A stretch of DNA of 64,000 nt from Phaeosaccion multiseriatum (taxonomy: Eukaryota > Protista > Ochrophyta, other classes), in assembly GCA_965112735.1 (NCBI GenBank), contig OZ218965.1, positions 248,001-312,000 of the forward strand, given 5' to 3'. Each line of letters begins with the position of its first letter. Within the stretch, counting starts at the first letter, position 1. The notes beneath the pieces were generated by a model, which was not told the origin of the DNA, made no database searches, and saw only the letters and a list, made by a program, of their open reading frames with translations. Made by a program: the position numbers and the translations under genes. Positions 16,427 through 52,201 of the stretch are shown here, piece by piece.

Positions 16427-19400
16427 TCACAGCTGTACCACCACCACGTTGGGGTCGTCGTCCTTGACAGCGGCGCTCAAGTCATCCTCCAGCTCTGCCC
16501 CAAGGTCCTTGCGGCTCGAGAGCTGCCCGCTCACCGCCAGTATGTAGGCAACGTAAGCCTGTGCGTCCATTGCCATCGCTCCGTCGGCTCCGCTCTCTCC
16601 CTCGGCGGCCGATACGCTTTGCTCGTCCTCCTCCTCCCAGCCCTCGTCCTCCTCCCATCCCTCCTCCTCCTCCTCCTCCCCTTCCTCCTGCCCCCCCGCC
16701 GCACCTCCTTCCTGCCCCTGCTGCCAGCCTTCGTCATCCGCCTCACCCCCCACTATTATCTCGACAGTCTTGCCTTTGAGCAGCTTCGCCTCATTGAAGA
16801 GCAAGTTGCCCACTGCCGCCTTCCTCACCTCCCCCGTGAATCGTCTCAAGTCCATGATATCCTTCATGTCCGGGTCCTCCTGCAGACGAATGGAAGATAC
16901 CCGTGGCCCTCCGTCCTTCCACGGCTCGAACACCCTCGCCTTGACCGCCTCAGCGAAGAGGTCCGGTTCAAAGGCCAGCGCCGCTCTTCCACTCGTGCGC
17001 TCCTCCAGCGGCAAGGCGTGTTTGAGGTTGATGATGGCGCTATAGGCCGCAGCATTCGCCTGTAGCCCCCTATCCTTCATGTGGTCGAGCTGCTCCAATG
17101 CAATCTCCAATGCCCCTGCCCGGCAAAGAGCCGTGATGAGCGCATTATAAGCAGGCGTGTCGATACGCACTTCTCCCCCCTTCGCCCCGCGCAGCCCGGG
17201 CTCGTTGGTACGCATGTCACGCGCGAGACTAAGTGCCCCGTCACACTCATTGGCGTTACAGAGTGCCAGGAGCACAGGGTTCATTCGCACCTCATCACTC
17301 ACAAGCATGCCCTTGTCCATGCTTTCCACCACGTACTGCGTGCGGTACACAAGGCCACGGCGAGCAAACACCTTGAGCAGCGTGTGGTAGGCGGGCCTGT
17401 CGGGGTGGAAGTCGTTCTCCCGCATGTCGAGGAACACCAACCAAGCAAGCTCGTACTTCCTCGCCCGTAGACACGCCGTTACGAGACGGCTGCTCGTTTT
17501 GGGGTTGCGCTGTGTCGGGCCCCATTCGGGCTGCCCCATCAAGTGGTGCATGGTCATGGCTTGCGAGAGCTCCTTCGCCTCCATGAGGGCCACGAGCAAG
17601 GTGTCCCAGCTCTTGTGGTGTGGGAACATGCCGTCCGCCTGCATCTCCTGCATGATGGACCAGCCTTGCTCCACCTCCCCCGCCCGGTTCAGTGCGGCCA
17701 CCAGCCAGTCATACGTATCCCTCTCCTCTTCAAACTCGTCAAAGGTCCCCTTCATGGACTCTCTCGCCGCTGACAGCTCGTCCAGGGCCTGCTCGTGCTG
17801 CCCCGCCTCCGCCAGCAGCTGGATGAGTTGGTTATACGAGTCCTGCGTGACTTCGATGTCCCTCTCTCGCATGAGAGCCACCGTGTCCAGGGCGTGTTGG
17901 TGCCGCTTGGCCTTACAGACAGCCCCCAGATACGTGTTCCACCCCTTGTCCGAGACCCCCTCCCTCCCCTCCTCCTCCCTCCCCACCTCCTCCTCCCACA
18001 GATCTGCCGCCAGCTCGTACAGCGCCGGGTCGCTGCTGCACGCCGCCACAAGGTCGGTGACAATGCCCACGTGGGGGCGGAGTCCGTCGCTTCGCATCTC
18101 GTCAAAGGCCATCATGGCGTTGGTGTGATTGCCAGTTGTGAGGCACGCCCCGATGAAGGCGTTGTGCGTGTCCTCGTCGGGCGTCACCCCCGAATCCGGC
18201 CTTCTCATCTCCGCCAGCATGTCGAGGGCCTTGTGATACTGTGTGGGTTCCGTGCTGACACACATACACATGTACTCTCCGCAGCGCCGCAGCGTCTCCT
18301 CATCAGGCCGCCAGCCGTACTCCTCCGTGCGCAGCTCCTGCAGGATGGTCACCGAGCTGGTGTGGTTGGTCATACAGCCCAGCGCCGTGCTCGCACGCAT
18401 GAGGTTGTTGCCACTCTTCACGCCCACCCGAAGCTCGCTCCTGTGTTTCTTGCCCGTCACCTTCAGCGCCTCGCCGAACTCTCGTCGCACACACCACGCC
18501 GCCGTGAGGTCCTCCACACACTCATCCCCTGCGGTGATTCCCCACTCGTCCATCTTGCTCAGCACAAGCTTGGCCTTGTGGGGCAGTGCGCACCTCGCGT
18601 ACGTTGAAACAAGCGCGCTATACACGTCCGGGTGCTTGGCGAGTCCGTCGGCCTTGAGCCCCTTCATGAGCTGTGCGGCTTTGGCATGCTTGCCCGCGTT
18701 GCCGCACGCCTCCACAGCGGCAGCATAGGCAGCCGAGTCAGGCGTCAACCCCTGTGCTCGCAACGTGTCCATGAGGGCCAGGGCCCCGGAGCAGTGCCCA
18801 CTCTCGGCGCAGGCTGCGAGGGCGGTGTTGTAGCTGGCCAGCGGGGGGGCGAGACCCGCCTTGGACTTGGTCAGCCCCCGGAACTGTACCTTCTTGACGC
18901 CCTGCCAGTTCTCCTCCTCGCCGAGCTCCTCCACATAGGCAAGGAAGGCCTCCTCCCCGTCGGTCATATCATTCTCCCATTCCCAACCCTCTACACCCCC
19001 CCAACCCTCGTCCTCGTCCTCGTCCTCCTTCCCCCGCTCCTCCTCCCCCTCCTCCCCATCCCCTCCCCCACCCGCGTTCTTCCACACCGCGTCGGCGTTG
19101 AGCGTACCGTCGAGCCAAGGTGTGTTTTCCGTGACGACCACCTTGGGCATTTTCTCGACGATGGCCGCCCTCTCTCTCTCTCTTCTCTGAAGCAGATCTG
19201 CCTCTGCCTCGCCTCCTCCATCAGGAAAGAAAGACGATGACGACAGCCAAGACCTTGCCCTGCCGCCCCTGCTGCTACCGCTAATATATCTCCCTCGCTG
19301 CTGCTGCTGCCCTCCTTTCCCTAGTGCTGTCGCCCACGCCGTGCTCCTCGGCTGCTGCCGCCGACCCTCTGCTGCCCCTGTTACTGCTGCGGGGGCGGCA

Positions 19401-19705
19401 TGGCTACTGCAAAAGAAGGACTTGCCGAGAGCGGGGGCGACAAAGGCCGAGGCCTGGCCGCCTCTACTGCTGCTGCTCACGGACGTCTTGCCCCTGCCCC
19501 TACTCGTGGTCATGGCTGTTCTAGTTACGCTCATGTGCTTCGCATCTGCGCCGTTGCAGCCCGCACGGCGCGTCCATGACTCGTGCCCGGCCACTGCTGA
19601 CTGGCCGCAGCTCCCCGCAGCCGCCCCCATCACTACCACCGCCGCCGTGGCGGCTCCAACGAGAGATGGCATCCCCCCCCTTCCCCGTCGTTTCCCCAAG
19701 CCCAT
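16427..19705 (-). CDS. Intronless pentatricopeptide-repeat protein with C-terminal SMR-like domain, probably plastid-targeted
   Basis: Single open frame of ~1090 aa (first ATG 19705) with many PPR motifs (SYNTALAACAESG, AYAAAVEACGNAG, SYNQLIQLLAEAG, AYNALITALCRAG). The C-terminal MDLRRF...VEIIVG is SMR-like, and the N-terminus has a hydrophobic stretch plus ASAFVAP. Confidence 0.88.
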   Translation of the reverse strand: MGLGKRRGRGGMPSLVGAATAAVVVMGAAAGSCGQSAVAGHESWTRRAGCNGADAKHMSVTRTAMTTSRGRGKTSVSSSSRGGQASAFVAPALGKSFFCSSHAAPAAVTGAAEGRRQQPRSTAWATALGKGGQQQQRGRYISGSSRGGRARSWLSSSSFFPDGGGEAEADLLQRRERERAAIVEKMPKVVVTENTPWLDGTLNADAVWKNAGGGGDGEEGEEERGKEDEDEDEGWGGVEGWEWENDMTDGEEAFLAYVEELGEEENWQGVKKVQFRGLTKSKAGLAPPLASYNTALAACAESGHCSGALALMDTLRAQGLTPDSAAYAAAVEACGNAGKHAKAAQLMKGLKADGLAKHPDVYSALVSTYARCALPHKAKLVLSKMDEWGITAGDECVEDLTAAWCVRREFGEALKVTGKKHRSELRVGVKSGNNLMRASTALGCMTNHTSSVTILQELRTEEYGWRPDEETLRRCGEYMCMCVSTEPTQYHKALDMLAEMRRPDSGVTPDEDTHNAFIGACLTTGNHTNAMMAFDEMRSDGLRPHVGIVTDLVAACSSDPALYELAADLWEEEVGREEEGREGVSDKGWNTYLGAVCKAKRHQHALDTVALMRERDIEVTQDSYNQLIQLLAEAGQHEQALDELSAARESMKGTFDEFEEERDTYDWLVAALNRAGEVEQGWSIMQEMQADGMFPHHKSWDTLLVALMEAKELSQAMTMHHLMGQPEWGPTQRNPKTSSRLVTACLRARKYELAWLVFLDMRENDFHPDRPAYHTLLKVFARRGLVYRTQYVVESMDKGMLVSDEVRMNPVLLALCNANECDGALSLARDMRTNEPGLRGAKGGEVRIDTPAYNALITALCRAGALEIALEQLDHMKDRGLQANAAAYSAIINLKHALPLEERTSGRAALAFEPDLFAEAVKARVFEPWKDGGPRVSSIRLQEDPDMKDIMDLRRFTGEVRKAAVGNLLFNEAKLLKGKTVEIIVGGEADDEGWQQGQEGGAAGGQEEGEEEEEEGWEEDEGWEEEDEQSVSAAEGESGADGAMAMDAQAYVAYILAVSGQLSSRKDLGAELEDDLSAAVKDDDPNVVVVQL

Positions 19706-20199
19706 CGCCGACTGGGTCCGTTGAAATTGGCACCCGGCAGCGCACAAGCAGTACAGACGCTGTCCAGCAGCTGCTGTGAGTCGCGCCCCCTGCCCTCTCG
19801 ATGCTGCGCCCTTGCACTCTCTGAATGTGTGGCGTTCACTGTTTTGGGGAAAACATAAGTCAGTGGCCCTGCCTTCAGCAAGAGAAATCGCTTTTCTCTC
19901 TTCTCCTTCCTCCCCTGATCCTGATCGGGAGAGAAGAGCAATGTGAGAGTGGTAAGAGGTGTGGCGTCGGTGTGCTCACTGGGTGCCGCGTTCTTGAGAC
20001 TTCAAGGCCATGATTGCTTGTCTCAAAGGGGCAAGTTATCTAAAGGTGAATGATCATCGTATGCAGCCATGTGTCGAAGAAGTCGCACGGAAGAGGCGGC
20101 AGGAAACGATCGGCTCAGAGTTGCGGAAGGATCGAAGGATAATCGGGAGAAGGTGGCTGCACTTCTGCTGGAGAGAGAGCGATTGTGGGGACGTCTTTG

Positions 20200-42175: not shown

Positions 42176-43370
42176 ATGGGTACAGGAAGTGGAGGAACAG
42201 GGAGAAAGAGAAGGAGGAGTGAGGAGGGACGGCCTTCACGGCGAGCACCCGGCCCCCTCTTGGTGCTGCTTGGAGCTGTGCTTCTTCGGAGGGACGTCTG
42301 TCCGATAGGAGCGGGAGCATCGGAGGTGTCACGGGGAGTAGCAGAGGGGCAGGGCGGAAAAGGATCAATAGGACGAGGGAGAGGAGATGAAGACGCAGGC
42401 GCACCAGCCCTTCTTGTCCCCTTCCGCCACAGGGACCCGCACAACAGCCACCGCGATGTCGATGATGTGTTCAACATCCTCGACTCGGACCAGGACGGCA
42501 GCATCGGGGACGAGGAGCTGAGGCAGGTGTGTTGAGAGCAGAGTCGGAGGGAAAGGGGAAGGGGACACAGTGGGAGGTCACGCAGGACAGGGACATCCTC
42601 AATGGCTCCCTGCTCATGTGCATCATGCTCCCTCTTTCCACCATTTCCCACACCCCTCGTTCTGCCTTCGCTCCCCCTCTCCTTCGATCTCCGCCCCTCC
42701 TGCCCTCCCTCTTCCGCCCTCTCCCCTCTTACCTCCTTCTATCAGTTCCTTGCGGGCAGCGGCGTGGATCTGGACGAACCATCCGAGATCGACAAGGGAG
42801 TGGGCAGTATCTTCAGACACCTCGGTACGGCGCCATTACCCATTACCCTTGCCCCCCGTCCCCCATTCCCTGTCGCTGCTCTCCTCTCCACATGCACTTC
42901 CATCCCCCTCCTTGCATAGAATCCCTCCGCGGCAGTCTCTACGCCGCCCCTCGTCTGGCCCCTCGCCGCCGCCCTGCCTCCTGCTAAGCAAGGGAAGGGG
43001 TGGGCAGTGGCTGGGGAGCGGATGGAGGCCTCCCTGCCTCAGAGCAGGCGTGTACACATACACAGCAGGCAGAGACGATCCGCTAACCCTCGTCAACTCA
43101 CATCTGCCTCGTACCACCAACTGTCACCCCGTACCACTCAACTGTGACCCCGTATGCTCCAGACCGCAACGCCGACCACGTGCTGTCCAAGGAAGACTTG
43201 CTGGCGTACTGGCAGAGGCAGGAGCAGCAGCTGTGGCAGGGACAGGCATATGGGCAGGGGGAGGCATATGGGCAGGAGCAGGAGCTGTGGGCCTCGCAGT
43301 CGGTGGAAAACGCGGTGCAGTGGGTGCAGCACGCCGTGCAGCTTCCCTCGCAGGTGCGTAAGCATACGTA

Positions 43371-43402
<32 letters not shown>

Positions 43403-44399
43403 TGTGTATGTTTCGCCAGGGGGGTGCAGGAAGGCCCAGAAAGAGATAAGTGTATTTCACAGCAGTCGGGCGGTCAAGTCGGAACGTCGCCGATCCTCCA
43501 GCCGTTCCTCTGTCGGAGCGGTGTGAGCAGCAGACAGCAGACATGTATAGGCTCTCGCCTCTATTCCCCCTTTGCCCATATGCCTCTATTCCGTCCATAT
43601 GCCTCTCCCCTCATCGTACCCCTCCCCCCCCACACACAAACACACACACACACACACCCCCTGCAGATTGCCGAGCAATTCCGAGTGGCGGACATCACTC
43701 TGGCGGACTTTCCTCTTCTCGTGGGGGAGGCTGACGCCCTGGAGAGGGAGACGGGTATCAGCAGCTCCGCCATCCGCAAGAAGCTGCGCAAGCATATGGG
43801 CTGGAAGGTCCTGGGGGTGGGGGAGAGCCCCTCCACGCCTGTGCTGACCTTGGTGAGTGGAGTGGTGGGGCGAGGTGTCAGGACTGACGTAGTTACGTAT
43901 GCATACATAACGGATGCTTGCAAGCAGAGCTGTGCCACACGGTGTCGCTGGAGCCGCGGCCCGCCTGCTCGTATGCCTCTATTCTCCCACCCCTGCTGGC
44001 GGTGTGCCCGCGCTGTGACCGACGGTTTCGACGGTTTCGTCTGCTCTCTCGTCTATCATGTCTCAACTCTTTCTCTCCTTCCCCTCTTCTCTCCCTCTCT
44101 CTTTCATTCGCTGCCGCTCCTCTCCTCTCTCTTGTGTCTCTCTTTGTCTCCCCCCTCTCTCTCTCTCTCTCTCTCGCTCGCTCGCCCTGTCCACCCCCTC
44201 GCTCCGGTGCCGTTTGATGGCCCAGGAGCCCGAGGTGAATCCCTTGTCAGTGTCTCTGCGGTGGTCGTCAAGCCCGCCCGACGGTATCTTCCCTGTCCAC
44301 AAGTGCATTGTGCGCAGGGCCTTGGCCCATGCGCCGGACAGCATCAACAACCACGGGGTGGTCACAGATGGCAGCAGTGGCACCAGAAGCAGCAGCAGC

Positions 44400-44434
<35 letters not shown>

Positions 44435-46307
44435 AGGCAGTAGACTCGCTTGGCAACTCGTGTCCGAGGGCCCGAAGATGGGCCTGACGGACGTGGGCCT
44501 GTGGCCTGACACCAGCTACGTGTACAGTGTGCAGGCGTGGAACTCCGTGGGGGGCAGCCAAGTGCTCCTCATTGACGTGCGCACCCCGAAGATGGCAGTG
44601 GACGGTGGTGGGGCAGTTGGTGATTCGGTGGAGGGCTTGGGGGGGGAGCAAAGCCTTGCGGAAGTGAGGGCAGGAGAAGCAGCAGGAGGAGGAGGAGGCA
44701 GCAACAACACACCCAGGGGGTTGGGAGTGGGAGCGTATGACCAGCACGAGCACTGGCAGACCCCACCCACGGGGTCGGCATCATCTGCGTCGTCGGAATG
44801 GTCGGCGGTGCTGTTGGGAGCCATGTCGCTACTCACTGCGGCGGGGCTGGCGTCTGCGATGAAGCTTCGGCGCTCAGTCTCGGAGGGAGGAGGAGGAGGA
44901 GGGGGAGGAGGGGGAGAGGGAGGAGGGGGAGGAGGGGGAGGAGGGGGAGGGGTAGGCAAGGAGAAGAGGATGAAGAAGGGGATGCAGGAGGGGGCGACAG
45001 CAGGAGGGAGAGCACGGCCGCCCGCAAGCGCAGGGCTGGGGGGTGGGGCTGGCGACGTCGCTGCGGGGAATTCTACCTCCGCCTCCGTGAGGGGAGATGG
45101 GGCGGTGGGAGTGAAGATTTCCGGGGCTGGACGCTTGTCGTTGGGAACCCCCGGGGGGGGTACTCCCGTGGGGGGCAGCAGCGCGGTGAACTCTCCGGTG
45201 CGGTCGCTGCAGAAGCGCGCATCAGCTGCCTTCGCTGAGAAGTCGGACCTGCCCCAGCCGCTGCAACAGCTCAAGGTGAAACTGACGCTCGAGGCACAGA
45301 GGCGGCTGAACAACAACAACATGCAGCAGCACGGCCCTCCCCTCCGCAGCAGCAGCATTGGCAGCAGCGCGGCGGGCAATGACGCTGTCGACTGCGGCTC
45401 CGGTAGCAGTGCGACGTTTCGGAGCCCAAACAGAGTGAACAGGGGGATCCATAGGGCCCAGACAGTGGGAGAAGGAGCGACGGCGGCAGCTGGGCTGGAG
45501 GTGCTGGCGGTGAGGAGCAGGGGGGGCAGCGCGTCGGGCCGGGCGAGTGGAGACCTGGCATGGAGTAGGGCAAGCAGCCCTGCTAGCAGCGGGGACGAGG
45601 GAGGGAAGAAGAGAGGACGGGCGGTGGGGAGCAGAGTCTCTCGGCGCAGGTTTCCCCTCCTGGATAGGAGTGTGAGTGCGAGCAAGAGTCGAAGCCCCCT
45701 GGCCAGGGAGGGCAGGGACGGCTTCTTTGGCGCACCGCAGCGGCAGGAGCAGCAGCAGCAGCAGCAGCAAGAGGTGGCGCGAAGAAGCAGCGGCTGCGTG
45801 GGCGGGCTAAAGCAGGAGCAACAGCGGAGGGCGTACAGACATATGCAGAGCACAGGGGATCTCGCCAGCGAATCAGAGGCACCTCAGGGGCGAGGGCAGG
45901 GGCAGGAGCACTTGGCGGGGAGGGGGGCGAGGTTGTCTCAGCAGAGTCACGCCAGCTCGGGCTCGAGTGGCAGCAGTTCCAGTTTGCTGGCCGCCTCGTG
46001 TGTGGGGGTGAGGCATTCGGACCAGGCGGTGATGCGCAAGCGGCTCACGGGGGCAAACAGTCTCTCCGCCGGCATGGGCAAGGAGGGCAAAGAGGGGAGG
46101 GAGAGCAGGGAGGGTAAGGAAGCGGAGACTTCGTGTCATATATGCGGGGAGCGGCTGCGCTTCACCACCCCTCAGCACCGCTGCAGCGTGTGCGGACAGC
46201 CGTTCTGTAACCGCTCAAGCTGCGTGGGGCAGAACAAGCACAAACGGTGGCCCTTTGCGTGTCCACACCTCAGCTGCACGTGCAAGGAGTGCTGGCAGCG
46301 AGGTTGA
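42176..46307 (+). CDS. STIM-like EF-hand pair + SAM, FN3, single TM, disordered tail, C-terminal FYVE-like zinc finger (exons 42176-42526, 42746-42824, 43163-43353, 43667-43852, 44226-46307)
   Basis: EF loop DSDQDGSIGDEE and second loop DRNADHVLSKEDLLAYW. STIM-type SAM SVENAVQWVQHAVQLPSQIAEQF...DFPLL...IRKKL...KVLG. FN3 with VSLRW...LWPDTSYVYSVQAWNSVG. TM WSAVLLGAMSLLTAAGLASAM followed by KLRR. Terminal CHIC...HRCSVCGQPFC...C...CKEC. Confidence 0.82.
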
Positions 46308-46430
46308 GGTGTCTGTAAACGGTTTATACATGCTGATGTATTTTTTCATTTGAGCGTTGGATTTCAAATCCAATGAGCGTATCACCACCTTCTGCACATT
46401 CCCCCACGCTGCCACTATAAAATAATTAGC

Positions 46431-50298: not shown

Positions 50299-50500
50299 GC
50301 CGCAGCTGCAGTTGGAGGACCAAAAAAAGGGGGAGAGAGAAAGGAGATAAGATCGATATTCATCGCCATCTGTGAGCCGACCTCACATCGAACTGACTCG
50401 GACTCTCGTCTTGCTGCCTCCTGTAGGAGACCGTCTTCCCCCACTACCGTCTACAGTCTCCTGAAGGGAGATCTTGCGGATAAGAGGAAGAGGGGGAAGG

Positions 50501-52201
50501 ATGGGGAGGAAGTGCTCGAGGAGGAGGAAGAGGGGAAGAAGGGCCAAGCCTCCCGTCCAAGAGGAAGAACGAGCTCCCGACAGAGGGTCTGCCCAGCAAA
50601 GGGAGATGGAGGTCCTGTGTGTGGTAGCCGGGTGGCTGGGGCCCCGGGAGTTGTGGGGCTTGTGCAGGGACATAGAGGCAGCATCGAGGCCGAGGAAGAT
50701 TTTCATGCACGCGCTCATGCCGGACGAGGCCCAGCAACTGATGGTGGAGAGGCTAAAGAGTCAAAAAGATGTTGGCGACACCGCTGTCACTGAGAACCCG
50801 CAGCAGGTAAAGGACGGGGCCGCGGAAGGGGAGGGGAAGAGGAAACGAAGGGCGGAGGGCCCTCCTCGGCAGGGCTCTCCCGAGGAAAAAGGGGTCAGGA
50901 GGAGGTACCGCATCAAGGGTGTGCGTTTGGGATTCGACGACACTCCCCCTGGTGCGCTTATGCACTCAGTGCCGGCCATACTGGAGGCGCTCCACCGCTT
51001 CTCAGCAGTGGCACAGGAAGTGCTGCTCCTGCTGCCGCGCTCCATCAGGCACATCGAGGTGATGCAAAACATGCTCCCGTTGAGTTGGAAGCTGGACATT
51101 TCTTGCTTTGAGTGGCTAAAGAGCGTTAGCTTTGGCAACCCCTACGATGGATCTGCCATTCTCCCGCCCTCACTCAAGAAGGTCACCTTTGGAAGACTCT
51201 TCAATCAGGCTGATTTGGTGTTGCCAAGCTCTCTCGAGGAGCTGGTGTTTTCAGAGGACTCAGTGTTCAACCGGCCAATCGCGCTCCCTTCCTCGCTGAA
51301 GAAGGTCACTTTTGGAAAATGCTTCAATCAGGCTGATTTGGTGTTGCCAAGCTCTCTGGAGGTGCTCAAGTTTTCATCCACTTCGGAATTCAACAGACCA
51401 ATCTGTTTCCCTACCTCTCTACGGAAGGTCTCTTTTGGGAATCAATTCGATCAGTGTAGGTTAGCGTTACCAAGCTCTCTGGAGGAGCTGGAGTTTTCAG
51501 ACCGCTCAGTCTTCAACAGGCCAATCGATCTCCCTTCCTCGCTGAAGAAGGTCACTTTTGGACGATACTTTGATCAGGCTGATTTGGTGTTACCAAGCTC
51601 TCTGGAGGTGCTGGGGTTTCCACCCCGCTCACGGTTCAACAGGCCAATCTTGCTCCCTTCGTCGCTGAAGAAGGTCACTTTTGGAATAGACTTGGATCAG
51701 GCTGATTTGGTGCTACCAAGCTCTCTAGAGGTGCTGGCGTTTCCCGTGGACTCAAGGTTCAACAAGCCAATCGACCTCCCCCCTTCGCTCAAGAAGGCCA
51801 ACCTGGGCGATGTGTACAACCAACCCGTGACCTTGCCAAGCTCTCTGGAGGAGGCGTCGTTTGGCCGCAATTTCAACCAAGTGCTCGACATGCCCAGCCC
51901 GAGCTCGCTCAAAACCCTCCACTTGGGCCTGCTCTTTGACCAACCGATTGAGCTCACCGCCCCCCTGCAGCACGTAACCTTCGGCGCGTCTTTCTCACAG
52001 CGGCTGCCGGATGAGCTTCCCGCTTCGCTCCTCCACGTCGTCCTGGGAAGGGCTTACGCGCAGCCTCTCCCCCCCCTCCCTGCTGGGCTGAAGACACTGC
52101 AGGTTGGCAAACACGCCAAGTTGCCACGGATGCATAAGGGCCTCATTGTGATAAAGAGGAGGAGCAGGGTCCCCGGCAGGAGGAGGAGGAGCAAGACGTG
52201 A
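50501..52201 (+). CDS. Intronless FNIP-repeat protein with a possible N-terminal F-box-like segment
   Basis: Alternating 22/23-aa units LPSSLKKVTFG..FNQADLV / LPSSLEVL.F...S.FNRPI, typical of FNIP repeats. MEVLCVVAGWLGPRELWGL is F-box-like. Confidence 0.88.
   Translation: MGRKCSRRRKRGRRAKPPVQEEERAPDRGSAQQREMEVLCVVAGWLGPRELWGLCRDIEAASRPRKIFMHALMPDEAQQLMVERLKSQKDVGDTAVTENPQQVKDGAAEGEGKRKRRAEGPPRQGSPEEKGVRRRYRIKGVRLGFDDTPPGALMHSVPAILEALHRFSAVAQEVLLLLPRSIRHIEVMQNMLPLSWKLDISCFEWLKSVSFGNPYDGSAILPPSLKKVTFGRLFNQADLVLPSSLEELVFSEDSVFNRPIALPSSLKKVTFGKCFNQADLVLPSSLEVLKFSSTSEFNRPICFPTSLRKVSFGNQFDQCRLALPSSLEELEFSDRSVFNRPIDLPSSLKKVTFGRYFDQADLVLPSSLEVLGFPPRSRFNRPILLPSSLKKVTFGIDLDQADLVLPSSLEVLAFPVDSRFNKPIDLPPSLKKANLGDVYNQPVTLPSSLEEASFGRNFNQVLDMPSPSSLKTLHLGLLFDQPIELTAPLQHVTFGASFSQRLPDELPASLLHVVLGRAYAQPLPPLPAGLKTLQVGKHAKLPRMHKGLIVIKRRSRVPGRRRRSKT

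Follow-up and report, generated by a model that had tools for sequence, protein, structure and literature searches.

STIM Ca2+ sensors are reported to be restricted to animals and choanoflagellates, and algae with Orai are said to need a different sensor (PMC11085791, PMC8318260, PMC11506743). In a 2016 survey of oomycetes, the BLAST match to STIM-1 in P. infestans 'just shared a SAM motif' and was dismissed (PMC4820453). Here we analyzed a locus of the ochrophyte Phaeosaccion multiseriatum, at 42176-46307 of a 64,000-nt stretch of contig OZ218965.1 (the window), which encodes an N-terminal hydrophobic segment, two EF-hands with a SAM domain immediately after them, an FN3 domain, a transmembrane helix and a low-complexity tail that ends in a FYVE-type zinc finger. 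This order of domains had been proposed from the DNA letters alone (the original prediction), and all the listed elements were present in exons that join in frame; of the refuting tests proposed with it, none went against its interpretation as far as they were run. Taken as a whole, the locus is best explained, with rather better than even confidence, as an intact five-exon gene for a STIM-like EF-SAM sensor that has a FYVE-type finger as its output. No published description of this architecture, and no paper with both 'EF-SAM' and 'FYVE', was found in the literature searched.

The window protein was searched exon by exon, and the family-level tests used orthologues and family profiles. A search of 1.84 billion representatives with exon 4 alone returned two true relatives, namely P0004, a 760-aa (amino acids) 'unnamed protein product' of the ochrophyte Chrysoparadoxa australica that has the same order of parts as the window protein, and P0003, a Tara transcript fragment. 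The matches P0001 and P0002 from the same search were bacterial Rib-repeat proteins and were discarded as false. A third relative, P0005/L001, is found on an ENA metagenome scaffold, where a single open reading frame (ORF) for an N-terminal exon carries both EF-hands and the first SAM helix. An earlier scan of the metagenomes with exon 4 alone had given no relatives, and the scan with a four-sequence SAM alignment gave 26 loci, many of them marine contigs of ~2 kb with one intact ORF of 560-930 aa (~20 intact ORFs). In these ORFs an N-terminal hydrophobic segment is followed by a first EF-hand (EF1, DxDGDG...E), a second EF-hand (EF2), SAM, FN3, a transmembrane segment with basic residues and a tail of 200-330 aa, and most of them end in the finger. 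A homologous-protein search with exon 5 and the finger region, in a database that contains no gene model of the Phaeosaccion genome, returned nothing, the exon 5 search being swamped by low-complexity words. The EF1 row of the window protein was left out of alignments A2, A3 and A5, where MAFFT had put it on EF2, and was placed correctly in the deep alignment A10.

The ESM Atlas cluster nearest to P0004 is an oomycete one (565 aa, 70 members, fn3 and SAM_2, with fn3 in 96% of the members). Known from its cluster summary only, it matches P0004 with a template modelling score (TM-score) of 0.81 over 227 residues, FN3 included, and with language-model features of 0.87. Judged by predicted structure and language-model features, this cluster belongs to the same family as the window gene; because the cluster nearest to P0004 is an oomycete one, the family, which is unnamed, spans ochrophytes and oomycetes. 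The description of the protein as an 'algal' Ca2+ sensor was correct in that the family occurs in ochrophyte algae, and too narrow in that oomycetes have it too. The oomycete members are auto-named 'Calmodulin', which hides their SAM-FN3 architecture from keyword searches.

The window gene has GT-AG borders at all four introns, and its exons join into an open frame of 2889 nt that encodes 962 aa. The spliced protein matched P0004 with phmmer at 2.2e-36 and >20 other family members at 1e-9 to 1e-23, and it was collinear with P0004 and the family ORFs over all four junctions, so that chance is excluded. Exons 2 and 3 and the EF1 piece of exon 1 were also collinear with the family alignment (exon 2 also with P0004). 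The joining of the SAM exon to the exon for FN3 and the transmembrane helix, as originally proposed, was borne out by P0004 and by intact metagenome and metatranscriptome contigs, in which SAM and the FN3/transmembrane part are contiguous in one ORF. The G+C content at third codon positions (GC3) was 0.59 in exon 1 and 0.73-0.88 in the four later exons; the introns had ~0.6 and no periodicity. When three of the four donor sites were read through, a stop codon was met ≤31 codons past the donor. The intron at the SAM/FN3 border lies ≤1 nt from an intron of the 22-exon Chrysoparadoxa gene that encodes P0004, and the other three introns are near introns of that gene, at positions that are not identical. 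The locus is very probably a real gene and a member of the family.

The relation of the sensor to STIM was analyzed by searching family profiles against 177,635 PDB sequences. With a 5-row SAM-only profile the first matches were 6pw7 (STIM, 2.1e-6), STIM2 (2l5y, 7.5e-6) and STIM1 (2k60, 8e-4), followed by Caskin-1 (4e-3), and with a 23-row SAM-only profile they were STIM2 (3e-7), STIM1 (1.7e-6) and 6pw7 (3.3e-6), followed by Caskin-1 (2.8e-3). In both searches STIM outranked every other PDB entry, and the SAM domains of Caskin, Eph and Shank trailed by 3-4 orders of magnitude, so that the SAM falls with those of STIM and not with generic SAMs, as had been claimed. A profile of EF2 plus SAM reached STIM2 at 4e-9, and two full EF-SAM profiles reached it at 1e-9 and 1.6e-11, each with an unbroken alignment that begins at the first helix of the EF-hands and ends at the last helix of the SAM. 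In the family profiles, the EF2-to-SAM stretch of the exon 3 region of the window gene aligns with the second EF-hand and the SAM of STIM. Residues 276-432 of the ESM Atlas model of P0004 matched two STIM clusters (SOAR + EF-hand_STIM1 + SAM_2) with TM-scores of 0.76-0.77 over 146-147 residues, and generic EF-hand clusters reached ≤0.51 against the same model, both sides of these comparisons being predictions. These results indicated that the EF-hand pair of the window protein, joined directly to its SAM, is related in profile-detected sequence and in predicted fold to the animal STIM Ca2+ sensor, and the sensor is probably homologous to the STIM EF-SAM.

Several observations weigh against this explanation. 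The four public runs that cover the locus are all DNA contigs that span the introns; collinearity with the relatives is the best available substitute for RNA evidence on the junctions. The whole-protein predicted local distance difference test (pLDDT) value of the Atlas P0004 model is only 0.54, and AlphaFold gave pLDDT values of 35 for the window FN3 (single sequence) and 47 for the P0004 EF-SAM (7-row alignment). Exons 3 and 4 used singly in a PDB phmmer search gave no STIM match, and no Pfam SAM match was found in the window protein exon by exon, so the link to STIM is drawn from the family profiles and the model of an orthologue and not from the window protein alone. In addition, the FN3 domain between SAM and the membrane span, and the 22-residue linker insertion of the window copy, have no counterpart in STIM.

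The remaining observations of this kind concern the EF-hands, and they bear on the alternative that survives best, namely a convergent assembly in which a common EF-hand pair and a SAM were joined independently of STIM. The protein would then be a surface Ca2+-binding receptor or adhesion molecule, with a finger for endosomal sorting only, and the FN3 domain is indeed typical of surface receptors. The EF part of the members matched only generic EF-hand Pfam families; Pfam EF-hand_STIM1 (PF25578), which the local Pfam was assumed to hold, was unmatched in the P0004 EF-SAM (E up to 1) and in 19 members (1e-3). Calmodulin came first when the P0004 EF-SAM was used in a single-sequence phmmer search, and the deep EF-SAM profile ranked calmodulins above STIM by summed score. 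However, calmodulins cover the EF part only, and their higher sum is explained by the four EF-hands that each of them has. Both EF loops look functional and Ca2+-competent by their residues, unlike the second loop of STIM. Convergence is nevertheless unlikely, given that the SAM is closest specifically to the STIM SAMs in two independent profiles, that the EF2-to-SAM spacing is collinear with that of STIM and that the predicted packed EF-SAM fold matches STIM with a TM-score of ~0.77. The preferred reading, a sensor of common origin with the STIM EF-SAM, does not make the window protein a true STIM, since CAD/SOAR and the adjacency of SAM to the membrane span were looked for and not found; what it has is a sensor module of STIM type, in an architecture and a lineage that are new for such a module. 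The features of the gene are collected in Table 1.

Table 1. Features of the five-exon gene, with positions in the window
Feature	Position	Strand	Details
Exon 1	42176..42526	+	aa 1-117; AAGATGG start context, basic N-region, hydrophobic segment, EF-hand 1
N-terminal hydrophobic segment PLLVLLGAVLL	42254..42286	+	aa 27-37; 11 residues, signal-peptide length; from hydropathy
EF-hand 1 Ca2+ loop DSDQDGSIGDEE	42482..42517	+	aa 103-114; canonical D-x-D-x-D-G...E; columns nearly invariant in the family
Exon 2	42746..42824	+	aa 118-143 and base 1 of D144; EF1 helix F, EF2 helix E; GC3 0.73
Exon 3	43163..43353	+	aa 144-207; EF2 loop, linker 43213-43299, first SAM helix 43300-43353; GC3 0.88
EF-hand 2 loop DRNADHVLSKED	to 43197	+	aa 144-155; first Asp (D144) rebuilt across junction 2
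Gln/Gly-rich EF2-SAM linker	43213-43299	+	~22 residues longer than in all relatives
SAM-like stretch SVENAVQW...KVLG		+	aa 190-257; split over exons 3 and 4; aligns in the family SAM columns
Exon 4	43667..43852	+	aa 208-269; remaining SAM (to ~43816), first FN3 strand
Exon 5	44226..46307	+	FN3, transmembrane helix, low-complexity tail, finger, stop
FN3 domain	44226..44591 (exon 5 part)	+	aa 262-391 overall, exon 5 part aa 270-391; Ser/Gly-run insertion 44373-44441
Transmembrane helix SAVLLGAMSLLTAAGLASAM and basic KLRR	44802..44873	+	aa 462-481; Kyte-Doolittle 19-residue maximum 1.83
Low-complexity tail	44874..46118	+	aa 486-900; ~420 residues; Gly/Ser/Gln runs; probably disordered, predicted cytosolic
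C-terminal FYVE-type zinc finger	46134..46292	+	C906-C958; TPQHRCSVC vs family R.RHHC(S/A)(R/K)C
Stop codon TGA	46305..46307	+	followed by TGTAA at 46314-46318; read from sequence

The match of EF1 in exon 1 to Pfam EF-hand_5 (1.7e-4) was under the cut-off because the end of the exon cuts the domain. EF2 had been compared with the 'hidden' EF-hand of STIM, and this did not hold, since its loop is near-canonical, with oxygen-bearing side chains at positions 1, 3, 5, 9 and 12 and His for Gly at position 6. The linker that follows might still contain a cryptic intron, but no convincing in-frame GT...AG pair of normal length was found in this Q-rich part of exon 3, and GC3 there is high. The linker also contains a direct repeat, GGCATATGGGCAGG twice, which is present at high depth elsewhere in the read contigs as well (43243-43276). 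The ESM Atlas clusters nearest to exon 4 by features are SAM_1/SAM_2; in the family, SAM_2 was matched above the curated cut-off in P0003 (27.1 bits, cut-off 20.5), and 8 of 19 members had a SAM match at ≤1e-3. The Pfam fn3 score of the window copy alone was weak (E 0.15, compared with 4.3e-6 and 27.3 bits in P0004, cut-off 25) because the Ser/Gly run interrupts the domain, and the conserved blocks FPVHK and Y.Y.V.AWN.VG.S are retained. The TGTAA downstream of the stop codon had raised the idea of a green alga, which was given up since the closest relative comes from the ochrophyte Chrysoparadoxa.

Some further observations were made on the SAM region and its introns. In three lineages (L001:7917-7982, the P0004 gene L002 and the window gene at 43353/43667) an intron interrupts the first SAM loop within the same five codons (QLP..VA.AF), each time at a different position and in a different phase, which suggests either intron sliding or independent gain. 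In the window gene this intron, the third, has a (CT)n(TG)n run just past its donor (43366-43410) and, immediately upstream of its acceptor, a run rich in (CA)n (43636-43659); the two runs are complementary and could pair, bringing the splice sites together. A GC-rich subgroup of the family (L014, L016, L020, L024, L028 and P0003) reads TALDFPLLV for TGYDFPELV and has L(S/N)LPQ(H/Y), close to the LPQY of STIM, and its C-terminal finger was poorly matched by regular expression. The window motif TLADFPLLV resembles that of the subgroup, though the best overall match of the window protein is P0004.

In the window gene, as in the rest of the family, EF-SAM-FN3 is flanked by a signal-like segment at the N-terminus and by a transmembrane helix with R/K-rich residues behind it. 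In the relatives the equivalent hydrophobic segment is upstream of EF1, within the first ~40 residues for most metagenome ORFs. From hydropathy and the positive-inside rule only, the EF-SAM is predicted to be luminal or extracellular and not cytosolic, in agreement with what had been proposed. The window protein would then cross the membrane once, or twice if its N-terminal segment is not cleaved and serves as an anchor. At 44548-44835 the depth of the DNA-run contigs rises from ~45 to ~760 over a GGAGGAGGAGG-type stretch, and this jump reflects a simple repeat common to many loci and is not a copy-number signal.

On the C-terminal side of the membrane span the length from the transmembrane helix to the C-terminus, finger included, is 481 aa in the window protein and 137-335 aa in the relatives. 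No conserved motif outside the finger was found in the tail in the family alignment, and the tail of the window protein had no Pfam match. In the finger, the eight Zn-ligand Cys/His columns form a cross-brace pattern and are invariant in the three members aligned. A profile of these three fingers searched against the PDB gave the FYVE domain of EEA1 first (3.5e-7), then WDFY3, Vps27, RUFY1, Hrs and ZFYVE16, and besides EEA1 seven further FYVE proteins were found at <2e-3. The window finger alone matched Pfam FYVE at 7e-4, under the cut-off. No match to SOAR/CAD (Pfam PF16533) was obtained in window exon 5, P0004 or 19 members, and no conserved coiled coil was found, which agrees with the claim that the output differs from that of STIM. 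The motifs for phosphatidylinositol 3-phosphate (PI3P) are lacking in the window finger, which has no WxxD and reads TPQHRCS for R(R/K)HHCR and CTC for RVC. In most relatives the R.RHHC core is intact, but they too have neither WxxD nor RVC. The prediction had read PQHRC in place of the PI3P motif, and this reading was confirmed: the basic RHHC, kept in most relatives, is lost. The ligand of the finger in the window copy is probably not PI3P, because the basic PI3P motif has decayed in this copy.

How might such a sensor be coupled to such an output? The Ca2+-bound EF-hand pair would hold the SAM compact and monomeric, and after a drop of Ca2+ in the compartment the EF-SAM would loosen and self-associate on the exoplasmic side, by analogy with STIM. 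Since the sensor is separated from the output by an FN3 spacer and a flexible tail, clustering is a more probable signal than a rigid relay of conformational change. As monomers, FYVE domains usually depend on avidity for membrane binding. In a cluster the C-terminal fingers would be multivalent and might so bind a phosphoinositide membrane or a protein partner with higher avidity. The result would be a tether or contact-site protein regulated by the Ca2+ store, without the Orai-gating CAD/SOAR of STIM. The original prediction had likewise envisaged contact sites under Ca2+ control and independent of Orai, and both points are conjectural. We propose this mechanism of clustering and tethering, inferred as it is from analogy, only tentatively.

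A wider proposal is that the family is the store-Ca2+ sensor of stramenopiles, with an EF-SAM of common ancestry with that of STIM; the clustered FYVE finger, and not CAD/SOAR, would then link luminal Ca2+ with Ca2+ entry or with the formation of contact sites. We consider this proposal improbable as it stands; if it is true, the origin of the EF-SAM sensor would be pushed back well before animals. A stronger version is more doubtful still; here the family would do in stramenopiles what STIM does in animals, detecting the depletion of the store and opening Orai or some other Ca2+ entry channel by a non-SOAR route, e.g., by an approach of the endoplasmic reticulum (ER) to the plasma membrane via the finger. 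For lineages with Orai but no STIM an unknown sensor is expected, and Orai does occur in brown algae and diatoms (PMC11085791, PMC8318260). The protein also has the right sensor and a membrane-directed C-terminus, the role of which might be comparable to that of the lipid-binding polybasic tail of STIM. However, neither SOAR/CAD nor any conserved cytosolic motif besides the finger was found, and papers disagree on the presence of Orai in oomycetes (PMC4820453 vs PMC11085791), which have the family. That the window copy is a degenerate, decaying paralogue, as its altered finger, its hydrophobic core of only 11 residues, the extra residues inserted into FN3 and the EF2-SAM linker, and a tail twice the family length might suggest, is the least likely of these alternatives, for its 2889 nt are coding without stop or frameshift and with coding-type GC3, and it has kept all the Zn ligands, the EF1 loop and those residues of SAM and FN3 that do not vary in the family.

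The reading that we prefer, an intact gene for a STIM-like EF-SAM sensor with a FYVE-type finger, places in ochrophytes and oomycetes a conserved family that has a STIM-type EF-SAM at the position expected of a luminal sensor and a different cytosolic output. This suggests that animals did not invent the EF-SAM switch, which would be a reusable sensor module of older date. The locus is a candidate store-calcium sensor in a lineage that is reported to lack STIM, and it provides a concrete gene for work on Ca2+-dependent clustering. Elsewhere in the window, a long ORF at 50474-52198 (+) carries six FNIP repeats (Pfam 3.7e-48), and an ORF of 1105 aa at 16427-19744 (-) encodes a pentatricopeptide-repeat protein (PPR_2, 7.6e-47).

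Compared with STIM1 and STIM2 (2k60, 2l5y, 6pw7), the window protein shares an N-terminal signal-like segment, an EF-hand pair and SAM that would be exoplasmic, a membrane span and a predicted cytosolic tail that ends in a membrane-directed element. It differs from them in the FN3 and linker (~200 residues) that separate SAM from the transmembrane helix, also in all full-length relatives; in both EF loops, which look Ca2+-competent; and in the absence of CC1, CAD/SOAR and the polybasic tail, the places of which are taken by a disordered tail and a C-terminal FYVE-type finger. With the FYVE domains of EEA1, Hrs/Vps27, WDFY3 and RUFY1 the finger has in common the cross-braced pattern of eight ligands and, in most family members, the R.RHHC core. 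In contrast to these domains, the window finger stands at the extreme C-terminus of a membrane protein, and its missing WxxD, its C-x-C for RVC and its TPQHRCS for RRHHCR make PI3P binding doubtful. Protrudin (ZFYVE27), a membrane protein resident in the ER, has a FYVE domain of non-canonical type and tethers the ER to late endosomes. It lacks a luminal sensor domain, and a specific sequence relation to it is not shown, its FYVE domain being a weak PDB match to the finger profile (E 2.1). The likeness is one of logic only: like protrudin, the window protein would be anchored in one membrane and might bridge it to a second by a non-canonical FYVE-type finger in the cytosol.

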